From assembly GCA_946965045.2 (NCBI GenBank), contig OX337230.1:1612001-1676000 (forward strand): 64,000 bases of DNA, read 5' to 3'. Source of the DNA: Epithemia pelagica. Taxonomy: Eukaryota > Protista > Bacillariophyta. A program made the translations under genes and the position numbers. Under the pieces are notes generated by a model. It had not been told where the DNA came from, did no database searches, and saw only the letters and a list, made by a program, of their open reading frames with translations. The stretch's first letter is position 1. The number at the start of each line of letters is the position of its first letter. This document shows positions 42,813 through 49,196 of the stretch, piece by piece.

Positions 42813-44436
42813 CTATGCCCGCGATGGGTCGTTCAAGTTCAAAGTTTCAAGTAGATGATCCCATCCACTCTCAAGGTCTCTGAGGATGGAGATAAAATGG
42901 TGAACGCCGTTGCAGCCAGTTTCTACGGATGCATACAAGTTGGATGGAACAGTGCACATTGCATTTCGGGGCTCTTGCAAGCTTTCCACATCAGCTTCCA
43001 CACAAGGTCCAAACAGCAAAAGGATCGAAGGAAAACAGCTTGCACCACATGAACCCTTCTGACCTGCACTTGTGTACGCCGAAGAGGTCCATGGTATTGC
43101 TGACGCTACACTACAGGTCTCTTCTCCATCAGAAGACATGTCATCAATCGATTGCTCGGTGTATGTCCGCAATCTCGCTGATTCTGCATGGTCGTTATCA
43201 GTGGTGGGATTTCCGATTTCTTGTAGGTATGGAGCGTTCATGTGACTCAATAGAATTTCAAAAGGCGGCACATGGTCCATTGTAGCCGTCATAAGAGTAC
43301 GGGTGGTGAAGCTATGATATTTTCCATACACTGATGAATATGCTGCCAAGACCTAGAGAGGAGCAACCGCATAAAATGATGCTAAGTGTTAGGCAATCAC
43401 AATGCTGAAAACAAACACCTGGTGGACGTACCGCTGCTTTGGGGGTGGGAAAATCAGTAGGCACTTTTGCACTGTTGTCTAGAAATGAGATTTGATAGGC
43501 GATTTGTCTCTTTATCCACAGCAATCCGGAAGCGGCGGAACGTTCCGCAATGAAAGGTCGTCTGGGATGTCGATTTGAGTTAATTTCATATTGTAAAAGT
43601 TGAAGCAAAGTGGGACTTGCCAGAGGTGTGTCCTGCGATGACGAGTTCGCTTGTTGAGACTCTAGCATTTCATGGACCGTTGTCTCAATTTTACGCAGGT
43701 TTTGTAAAAGATCATTGTGAGCCATGGCAATACCGAGGCGATACGTTGTATACCCATTGTTGGGACACCCCCGTATACTTCTCCAATCTGCATAGATCCT
43801 CACTGCTGCACAGAAAAGCAAGGCATCCATACTTTCACTCGTAGAATAAGGAGGAACTTGTGACAAAACAGTTCCTGGTCCTCTGGACGATACAGTAGCG
43901 CAATCAAGCGTATGGATTACGTGTTTTACGGAAGTGCGTTGTGTTGATGTGTCAAGGAAATTTTCGCGATCAAAACCAGCTTGATTTGCTGTCGATGCGT
44001 ACAAAAAAACGTCCGCCACATCACGAAGATTCATTGCAGAGACTGTCTCTCGTGAGAGAAAACTCTCCTCTGCACCCAAGGAGATGGAACGCTTGGAACA
44101 GCTCTGTTGATCCTGAAGATGGTCATCGATTTCACGACTTTTCGTCAAAAAGACACTTGATGGAGGGCGTACATGGGGAATCCAGCAAAATGTGCTCGAT
44201 GACTGCCTCGTGGAACCTTGATCCCTGTGATTGATGGCAGAAATGCAGAAATGGTACCTGCAAAAGAGAACCTGGTATCCAGATACAAGAAAGGCTTCTA
44301 TGAATGATGCATTGAGAAAGAAACATTTCCAGATCTCCCGTATGATGGCACTCAAAATTTCCCAAGGATTGTACAGCTTCAGGTGGTCCGAGAGGGCTCG
44401 AACAAGCCACGTCATTGTGCCCAGTTCACAGGGCAT
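42813..44436 (-). CDS. Glycolipid-transfer-protein (GLTP)-domain protein; intron 43353-43431; 5' end uncertain
   Basis: SAASGLLWIKRQ and, across a 79-nt GT-AG intron, KAA|VLAAYSSVYGKYH, matching the GLTP LLWLxR and AYxxxLxxYH motifs. Confidence 0.6.
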
Positions 44437-44446
44437 GGTAGTATTA

Positions 44447-44620
44447 AGAACTCCCTATGTCTAGTCCCTTTTGAGGAGGGTCGCCCGGCGCGGAGGGTAG
44501 AATGACGAGGAGGGAACACGTCGAGGAGGGCGCATGCCCGTCGAGAAGTGTTCCCGACGAGGAATTCTCCCGACAAGTAGGGCGCCCGACGAGAAGGGAC
44601 GGCCAGGCATAGGGAGTTCA
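44447..44620. mobile_element. 174-bp cassette bounded by inverted repeats (MITE-like or recombinase-site-like), TA-flanked
   Basis: GAACTCCCTATG (44448-44459) and its perfect reverse complement CATAGGGAGTTC (44608-44619), extendable to 21 bp with 3 mismatches. TA at 44445-44446 and 44621-44622. GC-rich interior with repeated GAGGAGGG and CCCGAC motifs. Confidence 0.6.
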
Positions 44621-44633
44621 TAAACTTACTCCC

Positions 44634-44662
44634 TATCAGACTATGAAAGTAGTGAGTCTCAC
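44634..44662 (+). repeat. Left terminal inverted repeat of the YR element
   Basis: TATCAGACTATGAAAGTAGTGAGTCTCAC. Confidence 0.9.
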
Positions 44663-44884
44663 GCGGGTCCATTTAACAAACTAGACATTACCAGAAATGT
44701 CGCTGAGACAGCCTACGACAGGGGCACTAGTAGCAAGATTTCAAACCATCCGTTGTGACTATTACTTAGGCCCCCCGATCTCGTCGACGTTCCTTCCCTC
44801 TCGTTCTCGAAAATCAGGAAGGAAGGAAGACCATGAGATTGTGCTTTCGACGGCTCCATCCTACCTAAACCAGTGTTTTGAACC

Positions 44885-45265
44885 ATGAATGTTATAGACT
44901 TAGTAACTAGTAGTGAGGAGAATGACTCATCCAGCTCGTCGGATTCCTCCACCTCGATGATGTTCCTCTTCGAGGATGACAACATGTGGAACTGGAACCA
45001 CGAGTACGTTCCGAGGGTCCTCGAGTGCACTGGAGAGTCTGAGGAGCACAGTCTCTCCAGTGACCCTTGGATCCTCGAAAAGGGCTATCGATGGTAAGTT
45101 TTTTGTTTGATTGTTGCATTGTTGAGGCTGTTTGATGGCCGGGAAGATGATTTTTGGCCATGGTGGTCTTCCTTTTCCGTCGATTTCTTCCTGGTCGCAC
45201 TTAGCGTTTCCAGGCTCAACGGATTTGAATCCTTCTCTCACTTGTCACTTTTCCTCGGATTATGA
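44885..45265 (+). CDS. Possible spliced upstream ORF (89 aa, acidic/Ser-rich); exons 44885-45093 and 45205-45265
   Basis: Strong donor TG|GTAAGT at 45094 and acceptor CTTAG at 45204. The spliced frame stops at TGA 45263-45265, overlapping the recombinase ATG at 45262 (ATGA). Confidence 0.35.
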
Positions 45266-48148
45266 AATTGAAAAGCACCACTGTGAGGAAGACCATGATG
45301 AAGACTCGACAGACGACCCGCCGAGCCGCAGCGGCGGCAACCACTACCACATCGGAGAAGGAGAACATCACACCTCCGCCGACGACGACGATTGCGGGCA
45401 ACAAACGGCCCTCGTGTGCAACGGAAGGTGTGGATGACCCTTCCACCTCCATTCCTCTCTCGATCAGCATTGCTCGACCAGAACAAGGGTAAGTCTGTTG
45501 ATTGTTGCTTGGTGGCTTCTTGATTGTTGCATCGATTTCGTTCTTTGCTAACTCGTTGATTGTTTTGTTGTTCACAGGGGACGCCGCCCTCCGTTGGAGC
45601 CACGACCTGGTGTTCATCCCAACCTTCCCGAAGCTGCCGCGGCTTCCACCAACACAACCGGAACCCAACAACCCAACTCGTTGGCCACCAGGTATGTTGA
45701 TTGTCGCGTTCATCATTGTTGGTTTGCTCGTTGTTTGTTGCGTGTCATGTTGCATTCGTTCTGCTCTAACCGGTTGATTGTTTTGTGTCAGGAACGAAGA
45801 GCCTACCACCGTTGTTGTGGATTCTCTTCCTGACATGGTGAGCTCTCCCATGCGTCAGGTCATGGAGCTCCGACTGTCCTCCCACCTGATTCCTCCATCG
45901 TTGGACGTCATCGCCGCTGCTTTTTCGTCGCGGACCGATCTGGTCGTCGACGAGGCGACCAACAAGATCATGATGGTGCACCAGACCTCCAATACCGTGC
46001 CCAGTCTCCACGACCGCCCGAACGACCTTGCCGCTCTTTCGCGCTATGCCTTGTTGTCCAAGGATGCGCTCGGCCCGAACACTGGGACTCTTCGCAACTC
46101 GTCGCTGAACACCAAGAGCTACGAACGGGAAAAGAAGCAGAACTTCAAACGCTTCCTTCAGACTCTTCAGCAACACCACGAACTGGACATCCTGGTCCAC
46201 CTCTTGCCCGATCCGACGAACCCCAAGAAGTTTACTCTTCGTTTCTTCCTCTTGCTCCGAGGAACGAAGATTCCCGAGAAGGAAAATACCCTGAACCTGG
46301 CAATGTCGCTTTTTGTGAGTACTTTGAAAACGAAAAAAGGCAAGGTGTACCAACCTGCTGTGATCAAGAAGTTTGTTGATCAATGCTTTGCCGTCTTTCG
46401 AAGCAACGGTATTGAGTACTCTGTACCTGATTTGCGTTCGACGAAAGGATCTTTTTTGGCACAGTGCGCGGACATCTTTCGGGTGGAAGCCGAAAAAGAT
46501 CCAGACTATGGACGTCGTCCGAACAAGGCGATGGTTTGTATGAACGACGAAGAACTTTTCCGAACGCAAGCCGATCCTCCGATTGACTGGATCAACATCC
46601 CCGAAGACTGTCTACGTTGTGTGGTCTACAAGGTTTCTCGCCTGACTGGAACGCGTGGTGGGGAGGTCAGTCGCTACTTGTTGTCGTTGATTGTTATTGA
46701 AACGTCTCTCACTCATTCGTGTTTTATTTGTAGACCTACTTATTGAAAGCGGACGAAGTGATTCACATTCCGGCCCTGCCGGATTCCTACGGTGAAGAAT
46801 TGGCTGGGTTGCCGGCATTCCAACTGAAGGAATGCGACCGAGAGAAGACGTCGGGTCTGACTTTGGCGAAGCCGACTCTTCGTGATGACGAAGATCTCGT
46901 AGTAAATCTTATTGTAGACGATCCGAACGACGAGTGGAGTACCTACAAACTCCTGAAGCACTGGATTGATCGCGGATTGCCGAGAGGATGGAAAGGCCCG
47001 CTCTTTCTCAATATTGCTTCGCAGAAAGAGCGCGAGTCTCGTCCTCGCGGGGACGACTGGTGGGCTGGTACAAAGATGGTTCCGGACACAAGCAAGGCTG
47101 CCAAAGAAGAATACGAGAAAGCCCGAAAGTTAGGTCACAACGTCACTCCCCCCATGCGTCCGTCTGGTCAGTTGGGCAAGAACTGGGCCAATCAAAACGC
47201 GAAGATCTTGTTCCGGAGGTGCGGCCACGAACAGTGGCAGAAGGCCACTTCCCGCACTGGTCGTCGTACTGGTATCTCAAACGTGGCAGAATCCGGAGTT
47301 CCTCAATTTTTGGTGAACAAGTTCGGACGGCACAAAACGGATCGTGCCAGCTTCAAGTACCAGGAGTTTACGTCGTCGACGTTCTCCAAGGCCGTCAAGG
47401 CCAACTGGTACAAAGGGTCTTCCACCTTGCCCACATCTCCAACTGGTAAGTACTTTTGTTTGATTGTTGCTTGTTGCGATTTGTGTCTAACTCGTTCTTC
47501 TTTGTTTCTTCAGTTGCCAAGAAACAGAATTCTGTCGATGCAACAGAATCTGCCGTTGCAACCCCCGCCACCAACGCCATCGAGCCACACAAATCAACGC
47601 CGCCACCGAATTGTGATACATTGAATGCAACTGGTTTGGAGGCCGATTCGAAACCGACTGCTAAAGCGATTCCGCCTCTGCTGGAAAATTCACCGTTCTC
47701 TTCATCGGCTTTGCCATCTTCGTCTGTGTCTCCCAAACCGAAGGTACAGCCACAGGCTGTCAATGGCGCTCCTTCGTATGGTTTTGTTACGCAACAACCC
47801 GGTCAGGTGATTTTACAACAACCTCAGCCAATGATGATGCAGCCTCAGCAGCCGTACATGATGCAACAACAATTTTGCCAACCCCCCTTTCCGATGCAAC
47901 AGCAACCCATGATGGCCCAATCCATTTTCCCTTATGGCATGAATGGTATGATGCCCATGAATACCATGCCCATGAACACCATGCCCATGAACAGCACGCC
48001 CATGAATAACATGCCCATGAATGGCTTGGTTGCCCCTATGACCATGACGATGCAACCCAACATGGCTCATCAACAGCCTTTCCAGTTCATGGGCCAATCT
48101 CCCATGGATGCTTCTTCATCCAACCATGAAAAGAAGAAGAAGGATTGA
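45262..48148 (+). CDS. Tyrosine recombinase, 853 aa; exons 45262-45488, 45578-45691, 45792-46665, 46734-47445, 47514-48148
   Basis: Four GT-AG introns (89, 100, 68, 68 nt) join five ORF pieces in frame (2562 nt). Box I LTGTRGGE, box II TSRTGRRTG, then GVPQFLVNKFGRHK...ASFKYQ (R...RxxR...H...Y). C-terminal Q/M/P-rich tail. Confidence 0.8.
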
Positions 48149-48547
48149 TCAATGAAAGAAACCTGAGTAGTGGTTTGATTGGTGAGTCTCATCCTGTTTT
48201 TGTTTGTTTGTGTTACGTTTTCCTCAACTTTGTGCTTCTGTTCCACAGGCAGTCTTCCATTCGTCCACGGTAGTCACTACTACTGTAAGTAGCTGCTACA
48301 CACTCTTCTCTGATTGATTGTTGCATTTCCCATTCTCACACAATCTTTCTTCTTCTTCATTTTCCTTTGCCTCTGCTTTGGTCGTTCTGTTTCCTTTCTC
48401 GTTCCGTTGGTTTCGTCGTGTCGGTTTTTCATGGTGCCCTTTTCTTCCTTGGTTGGCTCGCCCCGCTCGTTTTCGCGCGATTCGCACGAATTTTTGGTAA
48501 TTACTACTTCCCGCTCCTACAATAATATCGTACTCTAGTATAAAAAT

Positions 48548-48576
48548 GTGAGACGAACTACTTTCATAGTCTGATA
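48548..48576 (-). repeat. Right terminal inverted repeat of the YR element
   Basis: GTGAGACGAACTACTTTCATAGTCTGATA. The reverse complement differs from the left repeat at 2 of 29 positions. Confidence 0.9.
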
Positions 48577-49196
48577 TGGGGTTAGTGGTCAAATTCCCTC
48601 CATCGAGGCAGGGGTGCTGCTGGCTTTGGCTGTGAGGGTACATTTTGCCTGGGGAATCATCTAATTCGTCCATCGACCAGGTGCTGCTGATTCAGAGGCA
48701 TCCAACTGGACGTTGCCGTGGGGACTCCTGATGGTTGTAGGATCCGTGTTCGAGACCTATGCTCTTTCTCTCCTCCACTCAGCAAAAAGTGAGCATAATG
48801 TGGAGATGGTTTCATCACTTTCCCAACATGAAATCAAAAGACATAAATGAAGATGATTCCCGCTCGTGAAGGTTTCTTCCGCGACTGGTAGCAGATTAAC
48901 GTACGAGAGCGAACGCGACATAGGGCGACATATCTACTTATCGCAAGTTATGACCATAGAGAATACACTACTCATCGCTCTTAGGAGGTTCCACGAGGTC
49001 CACAGCATAGAGCTCATTGGAGAAAATTTAGCCTACTCTTTGACGGACGATAGGGAGACGAGGTTTTACGTGGAAGTCGTCAGTCGCTCATAAGACATAC
49101 GATCGCGCTTCACAAAATCGCGCCATCATAACAAGAGCCAGCCAGCCTCCCTCCACTTGACTCGATTTCGTTCTGTTGTACCGATCAAGCTTGACC

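Follow-up and report, generated by a model that had tools for sequence, protein, structure and literature searches.

A young, polymorphic tyrosine-recombinase transposon of Crypton type with a palindrome split between its ends

The interrupted host gene and the recombinase gene

The window, the whole 64-kb stretch of DNA that was analysed, carries on its minus strand a host gene with a GLTP domain (43312-44436; Pfam GLTP, E = 6.5e-6), the 5' end of which is interrupted by an insertion. The inserted DNA is very probably an autonomous 4,144-bp DNA transposon of Crypton type, located at 44439-48582 and followed by a second TAGT at 48583-48586. In the empty allele a minus-strand ORF runs in frame across the insertion site from 48673, giving a read-through of 411 codons, and a 2422-nt contig of run X4 spans this empty site.

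The tyrosine-recombinase gene of the element lies on the plus strand (45262-48148) and encodes 853 aa. According to the ORF and splice model and the family alignment it consists of five exons (45262-45488, 45578-45691, 45792-46665, 46734-47445 and 47514-48148). Removal of the four GT-AG introns (89, 100, 68 and 68 nt) restores one frame of 853 codons, as a sequence-only reading of this DNA had proposed. Transcription and splicing of the gene were seen in RNA-like contigs of run X4, from which introns 1 and 2 are removed. A further GT..AG intron of 67 nt is located in the 3'UTR (48182-48248, plus strand), where an X4 contig stops at 48182 and resumes with CAGTCTTCC..., corresponding to 48250 onward. 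Upstream of the main ORF, tblastn points to a probable additional 5' coding exon of 70 codons (44885-45093, plus strand), in which a SIM-like VIDLV motif is followed by an acidic/serine tract and a GTAAGT donor. The encoded peptide is 43-89% identical in L002-L006 (tblastn). Judged by sequence, this exon would be spliced to the main ORF through an in-frame acceptor at 45275 or 45287.

In the family alignment the residues R, K, RxxR, H and Y were found with the Cre-like spacing of 23 and 9 residues, corresponding to R402 (46654-56), K443 (46845-47), R579 and R582 (47253-64), H605 (47331-33) and Y614 (47358-60). The first position of the R579-x-x-R582 motif is Arg where the canonical His is expected. 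The predicted catalytic set thus appears complete, with Arg replacing the first His. That the protein is a tyrosine recombinase, as had been suggested, is borne out by structure: a model of the homologue P0014 (residues 190-730, pLDDT 75.7) matched Cre with E = 1.6e-4 and a probability of 1.00 (Foldseek), and also XerH, Tn1549 Int, Flp and QRICH1. In AFDB the same model matched DUF3504, ZMYM, KCTD1_15, 'Tyr recombinase' and GCR1-like proteins, the nearest structural neighbours being the Crypton-derived DUF3504, ZMYM and GCR1-like proteins. An alignment of the window protein with P0014 covers residues 151-630 (E = 2e-52). Because window exon D folded poorly on its own (AlphaFold, pLDDT 44.7, unusable), a Cre-like two-domain fold of the window protein is deduced from this 26% identical homologue and the alignment. 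When ESM features of exon D were compared, 61 of the 100 best matches were Phage_integrase sets.

Pfam gave nothing above threshold for the exon pieces, the full-length relatives or any of the 23 alignment members; sub-threshold matches in relatives were to DUF3504 (5e-4) and Phage_integrase (0.1). A profile search of PDB sequences retrieved no recombinase, and a profile search with alignment A2 against a set of 5.8 billion proteins returned nothing. The nearest full-length protein relatives came from the diatom transcriptomes of Entomoneis paludosa and Cylindrotheca fusiformis. The other ORFs and pieces of the element contain no DDE, RT, RH or MT domain by Pfam, in agreement with the earlier view that the repeats enclose a recombinase gene alone. 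Every copy has its introns, so that an RNA intermediate is excluded.

Element boundaries, copies and the empty allele

The sequence-only reading had placed an element at 44634-48576, with true terminal inverted repeats and a TA as crossover core or duplicated target. The tyrosine recombinase of this description stands, while the ends have to be redrawn: direct TAGT repeats bound the unit, the TA lies inside the inverted repeat, and the left arm of the latter is subterminal. The real unit extends from 44439 to 48582, or to 48586 with the second TAGT, as defined by a second copy and by the empty allele. The second copy (L001) differs from 44439-48586 at 2 positions in 4148 bp and has unrelated flanks. 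In empty-site contigs of runs X1, X2 and X4, position 44438 is joined to 48583, so that 4144 bp are skipped and TAGT is common to both sides. The site observed in these contigs reads ...GGGCATGG-TAGT-GGTCAAAT..., and the empty site predicted earlier, ACTCCCTATGGGGTTAG, was wrong. Basically, the empty allele is a clean site with a single TAGT, whereas the filled allele has a TAGT on each side of the element. Word depth was 70 at the empty-site junction versus 138 in the flank. The insertion is therefore likely to be heterozygous and present on about half of the chromosomes, a state that is likely but unproven because word depth is not copy number.

Among diverged families, eight left ends start with TAG(T)... 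and eight right ends finish with ...TTAG(T), all of them in unrelated flanks. The terminal repeat TAG(T) bounds every copy in five families, with TAG instead of TAGT in some. Together with the empty-site contigs, these other copies identify the left TAGT (44439-44442, plus strand) as terminal direct repeat and crossover microhomology. At one locus (L003) a 382-bp derivative and a full copy are arranged head to tail with one TAGT between them in common, and the sequence of this junction is that expected for a circle junction. A back-joining or circle-junction contig was not seen among the assembled contigs, which drop rare forms.

The motif TATGG near the right end had been named as the terminal motif of stramenopile CryptonS. 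Indeed, it is the usual terminal direct repeat of oomycete CryptonS, and most members of CryptonS, a group with terminal repeats of 5-6 bp, carry it (PMC3212892). It is not the crossover here: at 48575-48579 it is situated 4-8 nt inward of the right TAGT, and other families have no left partner for it. A crossover at TATGT...TATGG was considered and rejected; other families do not conserve the left motif, and it is to TAGT that the empty site maps. CpG richness, also emphasized earlier, does not distinguish the element (observed/expected 0.99, versus 0.90 in the window).

The suggestion that the element is young and potentially active agrees with the near-identical second copy, the polymorphism and the transcribed and spliced gene. 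Alignment of the ends of genomic copies, a check that had been recommended, showed a multi-copy element with TAG(T) at its ends and unrelated flanks. Several near-identical as well as diverged copies in unrelated surroundings, plus presence/absence polymorphism, support a young, multi-copy, expressed and polymorphic tyrosine-recombinase DNA transposon with an intron-containing gene.

Inverted repeats, cassette and the joined palindrome

The 29-bp inverted repeat reported earlier was recovered exactly (44634-44662 and 48548-48576, 27/29 identical). It is contained in a repeat of 39 bp (44624-44662 and 48548-48586, 34/39 identical), which runs outward through the TA. In the 64-kb window the 20-nt core of the 29-bp repeat was found in the two arms and nowhere else; the number expected by chance is 0. 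The left arm (IR-L, 44624-44662, plus strand) lies 185 bp inside the left end and matches the reverse complement of the right end at 34 of 39 positions. The right arm (IR-R, 48548-48586, plus strand) is exactly terminal and contains the right TAGT, as shown by the repeat alignment, the copies and the empty site. The two arms co-vary in each family: identity was 31-34 of 36 positions within a family (in four of the five families) versus 22-27 of 36 between unrelated families.

Between the left TAGT and IR-L, within the mobile unit, lies a left-end cassette (44443-44623, plus strand), an imperfect palindrome of 181 bp whose centre is GCATGC (44532-44537). Repeats of the type CGA(C/G)GAG follow one another in it about 16 bp apart (44506, 44522, 44542, 44555, 44571 and 44587), each of them on the gene strand. 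Folded as single-stranded DNA, the cassette reached -44.1 kcal/mol (z = -4.07). Families with recombinases of 58-73% identity have almost the same cassette core. Only three compensatory pairs were found in the inner cassette, where covariation is uninformative because the region hardly varies. When the element ends are joined, one palindrome of about 265 nt results: the outer arms of the cassette extend the symmetry of IR-R and IR-L, and the joined ends fold as one continuous hairpin in every family. A palindrome that is split by integration and becomes whole once the ends are joined is an end architecture of which we found no description. The sequence-only reading had not spotted that inverted repeat and hairpin cassette, lying side by side, make up this palindrome.

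The order cassette, IR-L, gene, IR-R is found in five diverged families of the genome and also in L008 and L009, whose proteins are 24-42% identical. In L010/L011 (29% identical) the search revealed only a repeat-bearing hairpin upstream of the gene and no IR-L/IR-R pair. Two of these three distant relatives are on metagenome contigs. Alignment A1 found no relatives in metagenome and viral contigs, and an exact search of metagenome contigs with the cassette core gave no match. Rfam returned no RNA family for 44300-48800, which indicates that the cassette does not correspond to any known small RNA gene or target. The cassette was also considered as a separate repeat hosting the element; this was rejected, because right flanks are unrelated among copies and each cassette co-varies with its own element.

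Relation to known elements and a proposed route of mobility

No class of eukaryotic DNA transposons is less well understood than the Cryptons, reportedly treated by Goodwin et al. in 2003, whose ends are notoriously difficult to establish. The element described here has a recombinase with a Cre-like fold, no RT or DDE domain, short direct repeats as microhomology, no TIRs at its true ends and a clean empty site. The combination typical of Tc1/mariner elements (TIRs at the true ends, a TA duplication and a DDE transposase) was not found, nor was that of DIRS/Ngaro (RT/RNase H, a methyltransferase and an RNA intermediate). The element is thus of the known Crypton type, young and still mobile by cut-and-paste through a tyrosine recombinase.

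Cryptons have terminal direct repeats of 4-6 bp reflecting microhomology (PMC3212892; PMC13465315), and Kojima and Jurka (2011) saw no conservation at the nucleotide level between Cryptons of different species (PMC3212892). Shared with Cryptons and CryptonS are a sole tyrosine-recombinase gene, a length of 3-5 kb, short terminal microhomology repeats without target-site duplication, and low-copy autonomous elements accompanied by short non-autonomous derivatives. The TATGG near the right end likens the element to CryptonS, and its host may likewise be a stramenopile. In contrast to CryptonS, its repeat is TAG(T), of 3-4 bp rather than 5-6 bp, and not the TATGG of most members. It further differs from Cryptons and CryptonS in its conserved 39-bp inverted repeat with one subterminal arm, in the 181-bp repeat-bearing palindrome and in the Arg at the first catalytic His. 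The one diatom member of CryptonS, CryptonS-1_PTri, has 4671 bp and the terminal repeat CTGTAAG (PMC3212892). CryptonF-1_cRei, a Crypton that is active in mutation-accumulation lines of Chlamydomonas, is excised cleanly and prefers 5'UTRs (10.1101/2022.05.23.493040). Like the present element, it has a terminal motif matching its target (CACCG/CAYCG there, TAGT/(G)TAG here), leaves one motif behind on excision, inserts at gene 5' ends and occurs in more than one copy despite its cut-and-paste logic. It belongs to another Crypton group and host, and the text consulted describes no palindromic or repeat end module for it.

That the mobile unit is 44634-48576, a new recombinase family with true 29-bp TIRs, Tc1/mariner-like ends and TA as crossover core or duplicated target, is extremely improbable. 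The inverted repeat itself was confirmed and is far from random, and a TA adjoins its 29-bp core on both sides. However, the near-identical copy and the empty allele move the left boundary to 44439, 195 bp further upstream, the repeat goes on for 10 bases past the core and through the TA, and the contigs have no joint or loose end at 44634 or 48576. A genuine TIR and TA element, the nested pogo-like DDE_1 transposon with 29-bp TIRs and TA in L002, looks quite different. Inverted terminal repeats have been reported for other recombinase-encoding elements, namely MarCry-1_FO (16-bp TIRs, TA TSD) and CryptonF-2_PI (602-bp TIRs) (PMC3212892 Additional file 1). Unlike both, the present element has direct TAGT repeats at its true ends and one internal arm; moreover, the TIRs and TA of MarCry are owed to a fused mariner DDE transposase, which is lacking here. 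We also consider it very unlikely that a DDE transposase acted in trans with a 4-bp duplication at TAGT, the recombinase gene being cargo or a resolvase. Formally, a single TAGT in the empty site combined with two flanking the element is the pattern of a 4-bp TSD, and DDE transposons exist in the genome. Yet the true ends are not mutual inverted repeats (TAGTATTAAG... versus ...GGGGTTAGT), the element has no transposase ORF, and the head-to-tail pair abuts with one common TAGT. The flanking TAG(T) is constant in all copies and sometimes only TAG, as fits an element-specified microhomology and not an arbitrary target duplication. Almost no weight is given to a DIRS-like or other retro-derived element that lost its reverse transcriptase, or to a domesticated single-copy host gene. 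The inverted repeats and internal complementary region loosely recall the ITR and ICR of DIRS (PMC13465315), but introns are present in all copies and RT, RH and MT domains are absent; domestication is excluded by the several copies in unrelated flanks and the presence/absence polymorphism.

A Crypton in which the cassette is a mere promoter or regulatory region without part in recombination, the 39-bp repeat alone holding the sites, is possible, if rather unlikely. From the cassette to the start of the gene downstream the distance is always 100-400 bp, integration does not separate the two, and the repeats of the cassette are all on the gene strand. On the other hand, the crossover lies exactly at its outer edge, its outer arms continue the IR symmetry into one palindrome in every family, and the gene-less 382-bp derivative retains it entirely. 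The cassette and the right end exceed the body more than 10-fold in word depth, suggesting many short derivatives that keep both.

For the Crypton with a recombination module at its ends, the following cycle is proposed. By an exchange at its two TAGT repeats the element would be released in circular form by the recombinase, and re-insertion would take place by exchange of the circle junction with a (G)TAG(T) target. The short repeat being microhomology, the target site would not be duplicated. In the circle IR-R would abut the cassette and IR-L, yielding the palindrome of about 265 nt with the crossover about 90 bp off its centre, and core-like half-sites ATATGGGGTT and AACTCCCTAT would flank a TAGT-containing spacer. 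Half-site symmetry about TAGT is weak in some families. Conservation suggests roles for the palindrome and its repeats: the module may be the attP-like region of the element, the 39-bp arms and 16-bp-spaced CGA(C/G)GAG repeats being putative sites for the recombinase or an accessory protein, and it may also serve the neighbouring gene as promoter region. Lambda-type integrases, with a complex attP of core and arm sites by int, and Cre/loxP share the Cre-like two-domain fold, inverted half-sites about a short spacer and a repeat array beside core and recombinase gene. In contrast to them, the element is nuclear and eukaryotic, with an intron-containing gene, a target of only about 4 bp and an att-like region that is one palindrome as a whole.

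The element supplies ends exactly defined by an empty allele, an evidently recent copy that is apparently heterozygous, transcribed and spliced, and an apparently complete catalytic set with Arg for the first His. Its conserved DNA module persists between relatives at only 24-29% protein identity. Joined ends plus a TAGT target form a concrete substrate, and the recombinase a concrete protein, for a first biochemical reconstitution of a Crypton reaction; for work on diatoms they could also be turned into a site-specific recombination tool native to eukaryotes. A tempting misreading is corrected here, as inverted repeats in a subterminal position can look like TIR/TA ends. A bolder and improbable extension is an undescribed Crypton lineage, of diatoms and the hosts of the metagenome contigs, defined by a conserved attP-like palindrome of about 265 bp with 16-bp-spaced CGA(C/G)GAG repeats that integration splits asymmetrically; here the palindrome might be a folded substrate (a cruciform or hairpin, as in integron attC) or the replication origin of the excised circle. 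An origin of this kind would account for the increase in copies of a Crypton that moves by cut-and-paste.

Ends of the element and the empty allele

A query with exon D (46734-47445), the fourth exon of the recombinase gene, retrieved six ORF-sized relatives, all from a single ENA assembly. One of the fetched loci (L001) carries a near-identical copy in unrelated flanks, with 2 differences in 4148 bp compared to window positions 44439-48586. The match starts 195 bp left of the left repeat proposed in the sequence-only reading and ends 10 bp right of its right repeat. In copies that have diverged further (catalytic exon 58-73% identical), 8 left ends all read TAG(T)A... and 8 right ends all read ...GTTAG(T), again with unrelated flanks. 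Contigs assembled from four public sequencing runs (X1-X4) were placed on window 44000-49000. X1, X2 and the RNA-like run X4 each contain a contig in which 44438 is followed immediately by 48583; 4144 bp are skipped, and the four letters TAGT fit either side. This join is the decisive result for the boundaries. The empty allele therefore reads ...GGGCATGG TAGT GGTCAAAT... and not ACTCCCTATGGGGTTAG, as had been predicted. In DNA-like runs the depth was 70 at the empty-site junction and 138 in the flanks; thus, the insertion is probably heterozygous. Presence or absence of the element is precise at TAGT, and the terminal microhomology is specified by the element. The ends initially proposed, TIRs plus TA around a tyrosine recombinase (YR) gene, were wrong: the L001 match and the empty allele place the left end at 44439, bounded by TAGT.

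On the empty allele, a GLTP-domain ORF of the minus strand continues in frame across the insertion site, and a 2422-nt contig of X4 covers this site. Hence, the element interrupts a transcribed host gene in its 5' part. Only one allele of this GLTP-domain gene (minus strand, 43312-44436 and 48583-48673) carries the interruption, and the X4 transcript contig derives from the empty allele.

Inverted repeat, cassette and split palindrome

The inverted repeat itself was confirmed. Positions 44634-44662 match the reverse complement of 48548-48576 at 27/29 positions, and the 20-nt core occurs at these two sites only in the window (0 expected by chance). At full length the repeat has 39 bp (34/39 identity). 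The right arm (IR-R, 48548-48586) is exactly terminal and includes the right TAGT, while the left arm (IR-L, 44624-44662) is set back from the left end, by 185 bp in every family. Arms match each other at 31-34/36 positions within a family (four of five families) versus 22-27 between unrelated families. The 181 bp between left TAGT and left arm (cassette, 44443-44623) are imperfectly palindromic around GCATGC (44532-44537); their fold energy is -44.1 kcal/mol (z = -4.07). The cassette core is nearly invariant among families, and CGA(C/G)GAG-type repeats recur within the cassette at intervals of ∼16 bp, each on the same strand as the gene. Once the ends are brought together as in a circle, IR-R, cassette and IR-L constitute one continuous ∼265-nt palindrome in every family, which integration splits asymmetrically at TAGT. 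Inverted half-sites ATATGGGGTT and AACTCCCTAT flank this TAGT with a 9-bp spacer; the symmetry is weaker in other families.

We propose that the element would be excised as a circle through exchange between the two TAGT repeats and would re-insert at (G)TAG(T) targets. Split palindrome and repeats could provide an attP-like platform for binding and might function as the promoter, too. No circle junction was seen in the assembled contigs of the four runs over the element region.

The layout of cassette, inverted repeat and gene was found again in another family of the same genome (L008) and in L009 (24% identity), a metagenome contig whose gene lacks introns. Two further metagenome contigs (L010 and L011, 29% identity) show it in part, with only a repeat-bearing hairpin upstream of the gene. 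A 382-bp gene-less, non-autonomous derivative (L003:2970-3351; left 218 bp plus right 85 bp) keeps both ends; a full-length copy (L003:3348-7931) adjoins it head to tail, with one TAGT shared between the two. L006 has a second left end, located 58 bp beyond a right end where the contig stops. Word depth over the element ends exceeds that of the body more than 10 times. Because word depth does not equal copy number, this is no more than a hint at many short derivatives.

The recombinase and its gene

Profile searches yielded 121 relatives, the full-length ones from transcriptomes of the diatoms Entomoneis paludosa and Cylindrotheca fusiformis. Residues 151-630 of the window protein align with the Entomoneis protein (E = 2e-52). 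Structures were compared using an AlphaFold model of this Entomoneis homologue (pLDDT 75.7). In the PDB, the model matched tyrosine recombinases only: Cre (E = 1.6e-4, probability 1.00), then XerH, Tn1549 Int, Flp and QRICH1, which is Crypton-derived. Its matches in the AlphaFold DB were recombinases of the Crypton type and proteins domesticated from them: DUF3504, ZMYM, KCTD1_15, 'Tyr recombinase' and GCR1-like proteins. For exon D of the window itself, ESM features pointed to Phage_integrase sets; an AlphaFold model of exon D alone was unusable. The alignment places the catalytic residues at R402, K443, R579-x-x-R582, H605 and Y614, with 23 residues from R to H and 9 from H to Y. Spacings in Cre (R292, W315, Y324) are likewise 23 and 9. 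The catalytic set appears complete in a Cre-like recombinase family. The usual first His of the R-H-R-Y tetrad is Arg here (R579, 47253-47255) and Gln or Ser in relatives; HGLR is kept in a distant relative, and the DUF3504-like relative P0121 has His.

As first read, four introns restore the frame: five exons (45262-45488, 45578-45691, 45792-46665, 46734-47445 and 47514-48148) and four GT-AG introns give an open 853-codon frame. Introns 1 and 2 are absent from X4 contigs exactly at the predicted sites, and these contigs revealed a further intron in the 3'UTR (48182-48248). The gene is transcribed and spliced. Pfam gave no match in any piece of the gene or in antisense ORFs, so the reported absence of DDE or RT holds. 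The retained introns show copying at the DNA level.

All families conserve the protein sequence of a 70-codon ORF (44885-45093), which opens with MNVIDLV and an acidic/serine tract and runs up to a GTAAGT donor. This ORF is probably an additional, spliced 5' exon, whose start resembles a SUMO-interaction motif (SIM). Some oomycete Cryptons carry Ulp1-type C48 SUMO proteases (PMC3212892), so links to SUMO may recur among Cryptons. Between 44458 and 45210 (5' non-coding region plus upstream exon), the element shares 85-89% DNA identity with L003:3366-4637, while the recombinases of the two families are only ∼48-63% identical in protein. The DNA identity suggests that families have exchanged modules or that the 5' region is strongly constrained. 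At 45073-45152, contigs of X1-X3 (depth 290-520) replace or skip 78 bp with ends CT..AT, not an intron; therefore, other element copies differ there.

Relation to known Cryptons

The transposon is real and evidently active, although the grounds for flagging it, TIR plus TA with a YR, are wrong. As a Crypton, it belongs to a known kind of element, with a conserved end module as variant feature. Cryptons are defined by a YR only, 4-6-bp terminal direct repeats representing microhomology, and true ends without TIRs (PMC3212892; PMC13465315), and the element agrees in all three. It also behaves like an active Chlamydomonas Crypton, for which clean excision and 5'UTR preference are described (10.1101/2022.05.23.493040). 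TATGG had been named as the terminal motif of the stramenopile group CryptonS. This is correct for most CryptonS, but here TATGG is internal to the right end and does not mark the crossover; the sole diatom CryptonS listed, CryptonS-1_PTri, has 4671 bp and CTGTAAG (PMC3212892). Kojima and Jurka reported that no nucleotide sequence was conserved between Cryptons from different species (PMC3212892), and the literature searched contained no description of a long, conserved, repeat-bearing palindrome at the ends of a Crypton. The element is of value because its ends are exactly defined, it shows signs of recent activity and its end module is conserved.

Genuine TIRs with a TA duplication, in contrast to the Crypton ends, are present in a pogo-like transposon (L002:1684-3846; DDE_1 gene, 29-bp TIRs, 93% complementary), which is inserted in the left-arm TCTAGT of the cassette of that copy.
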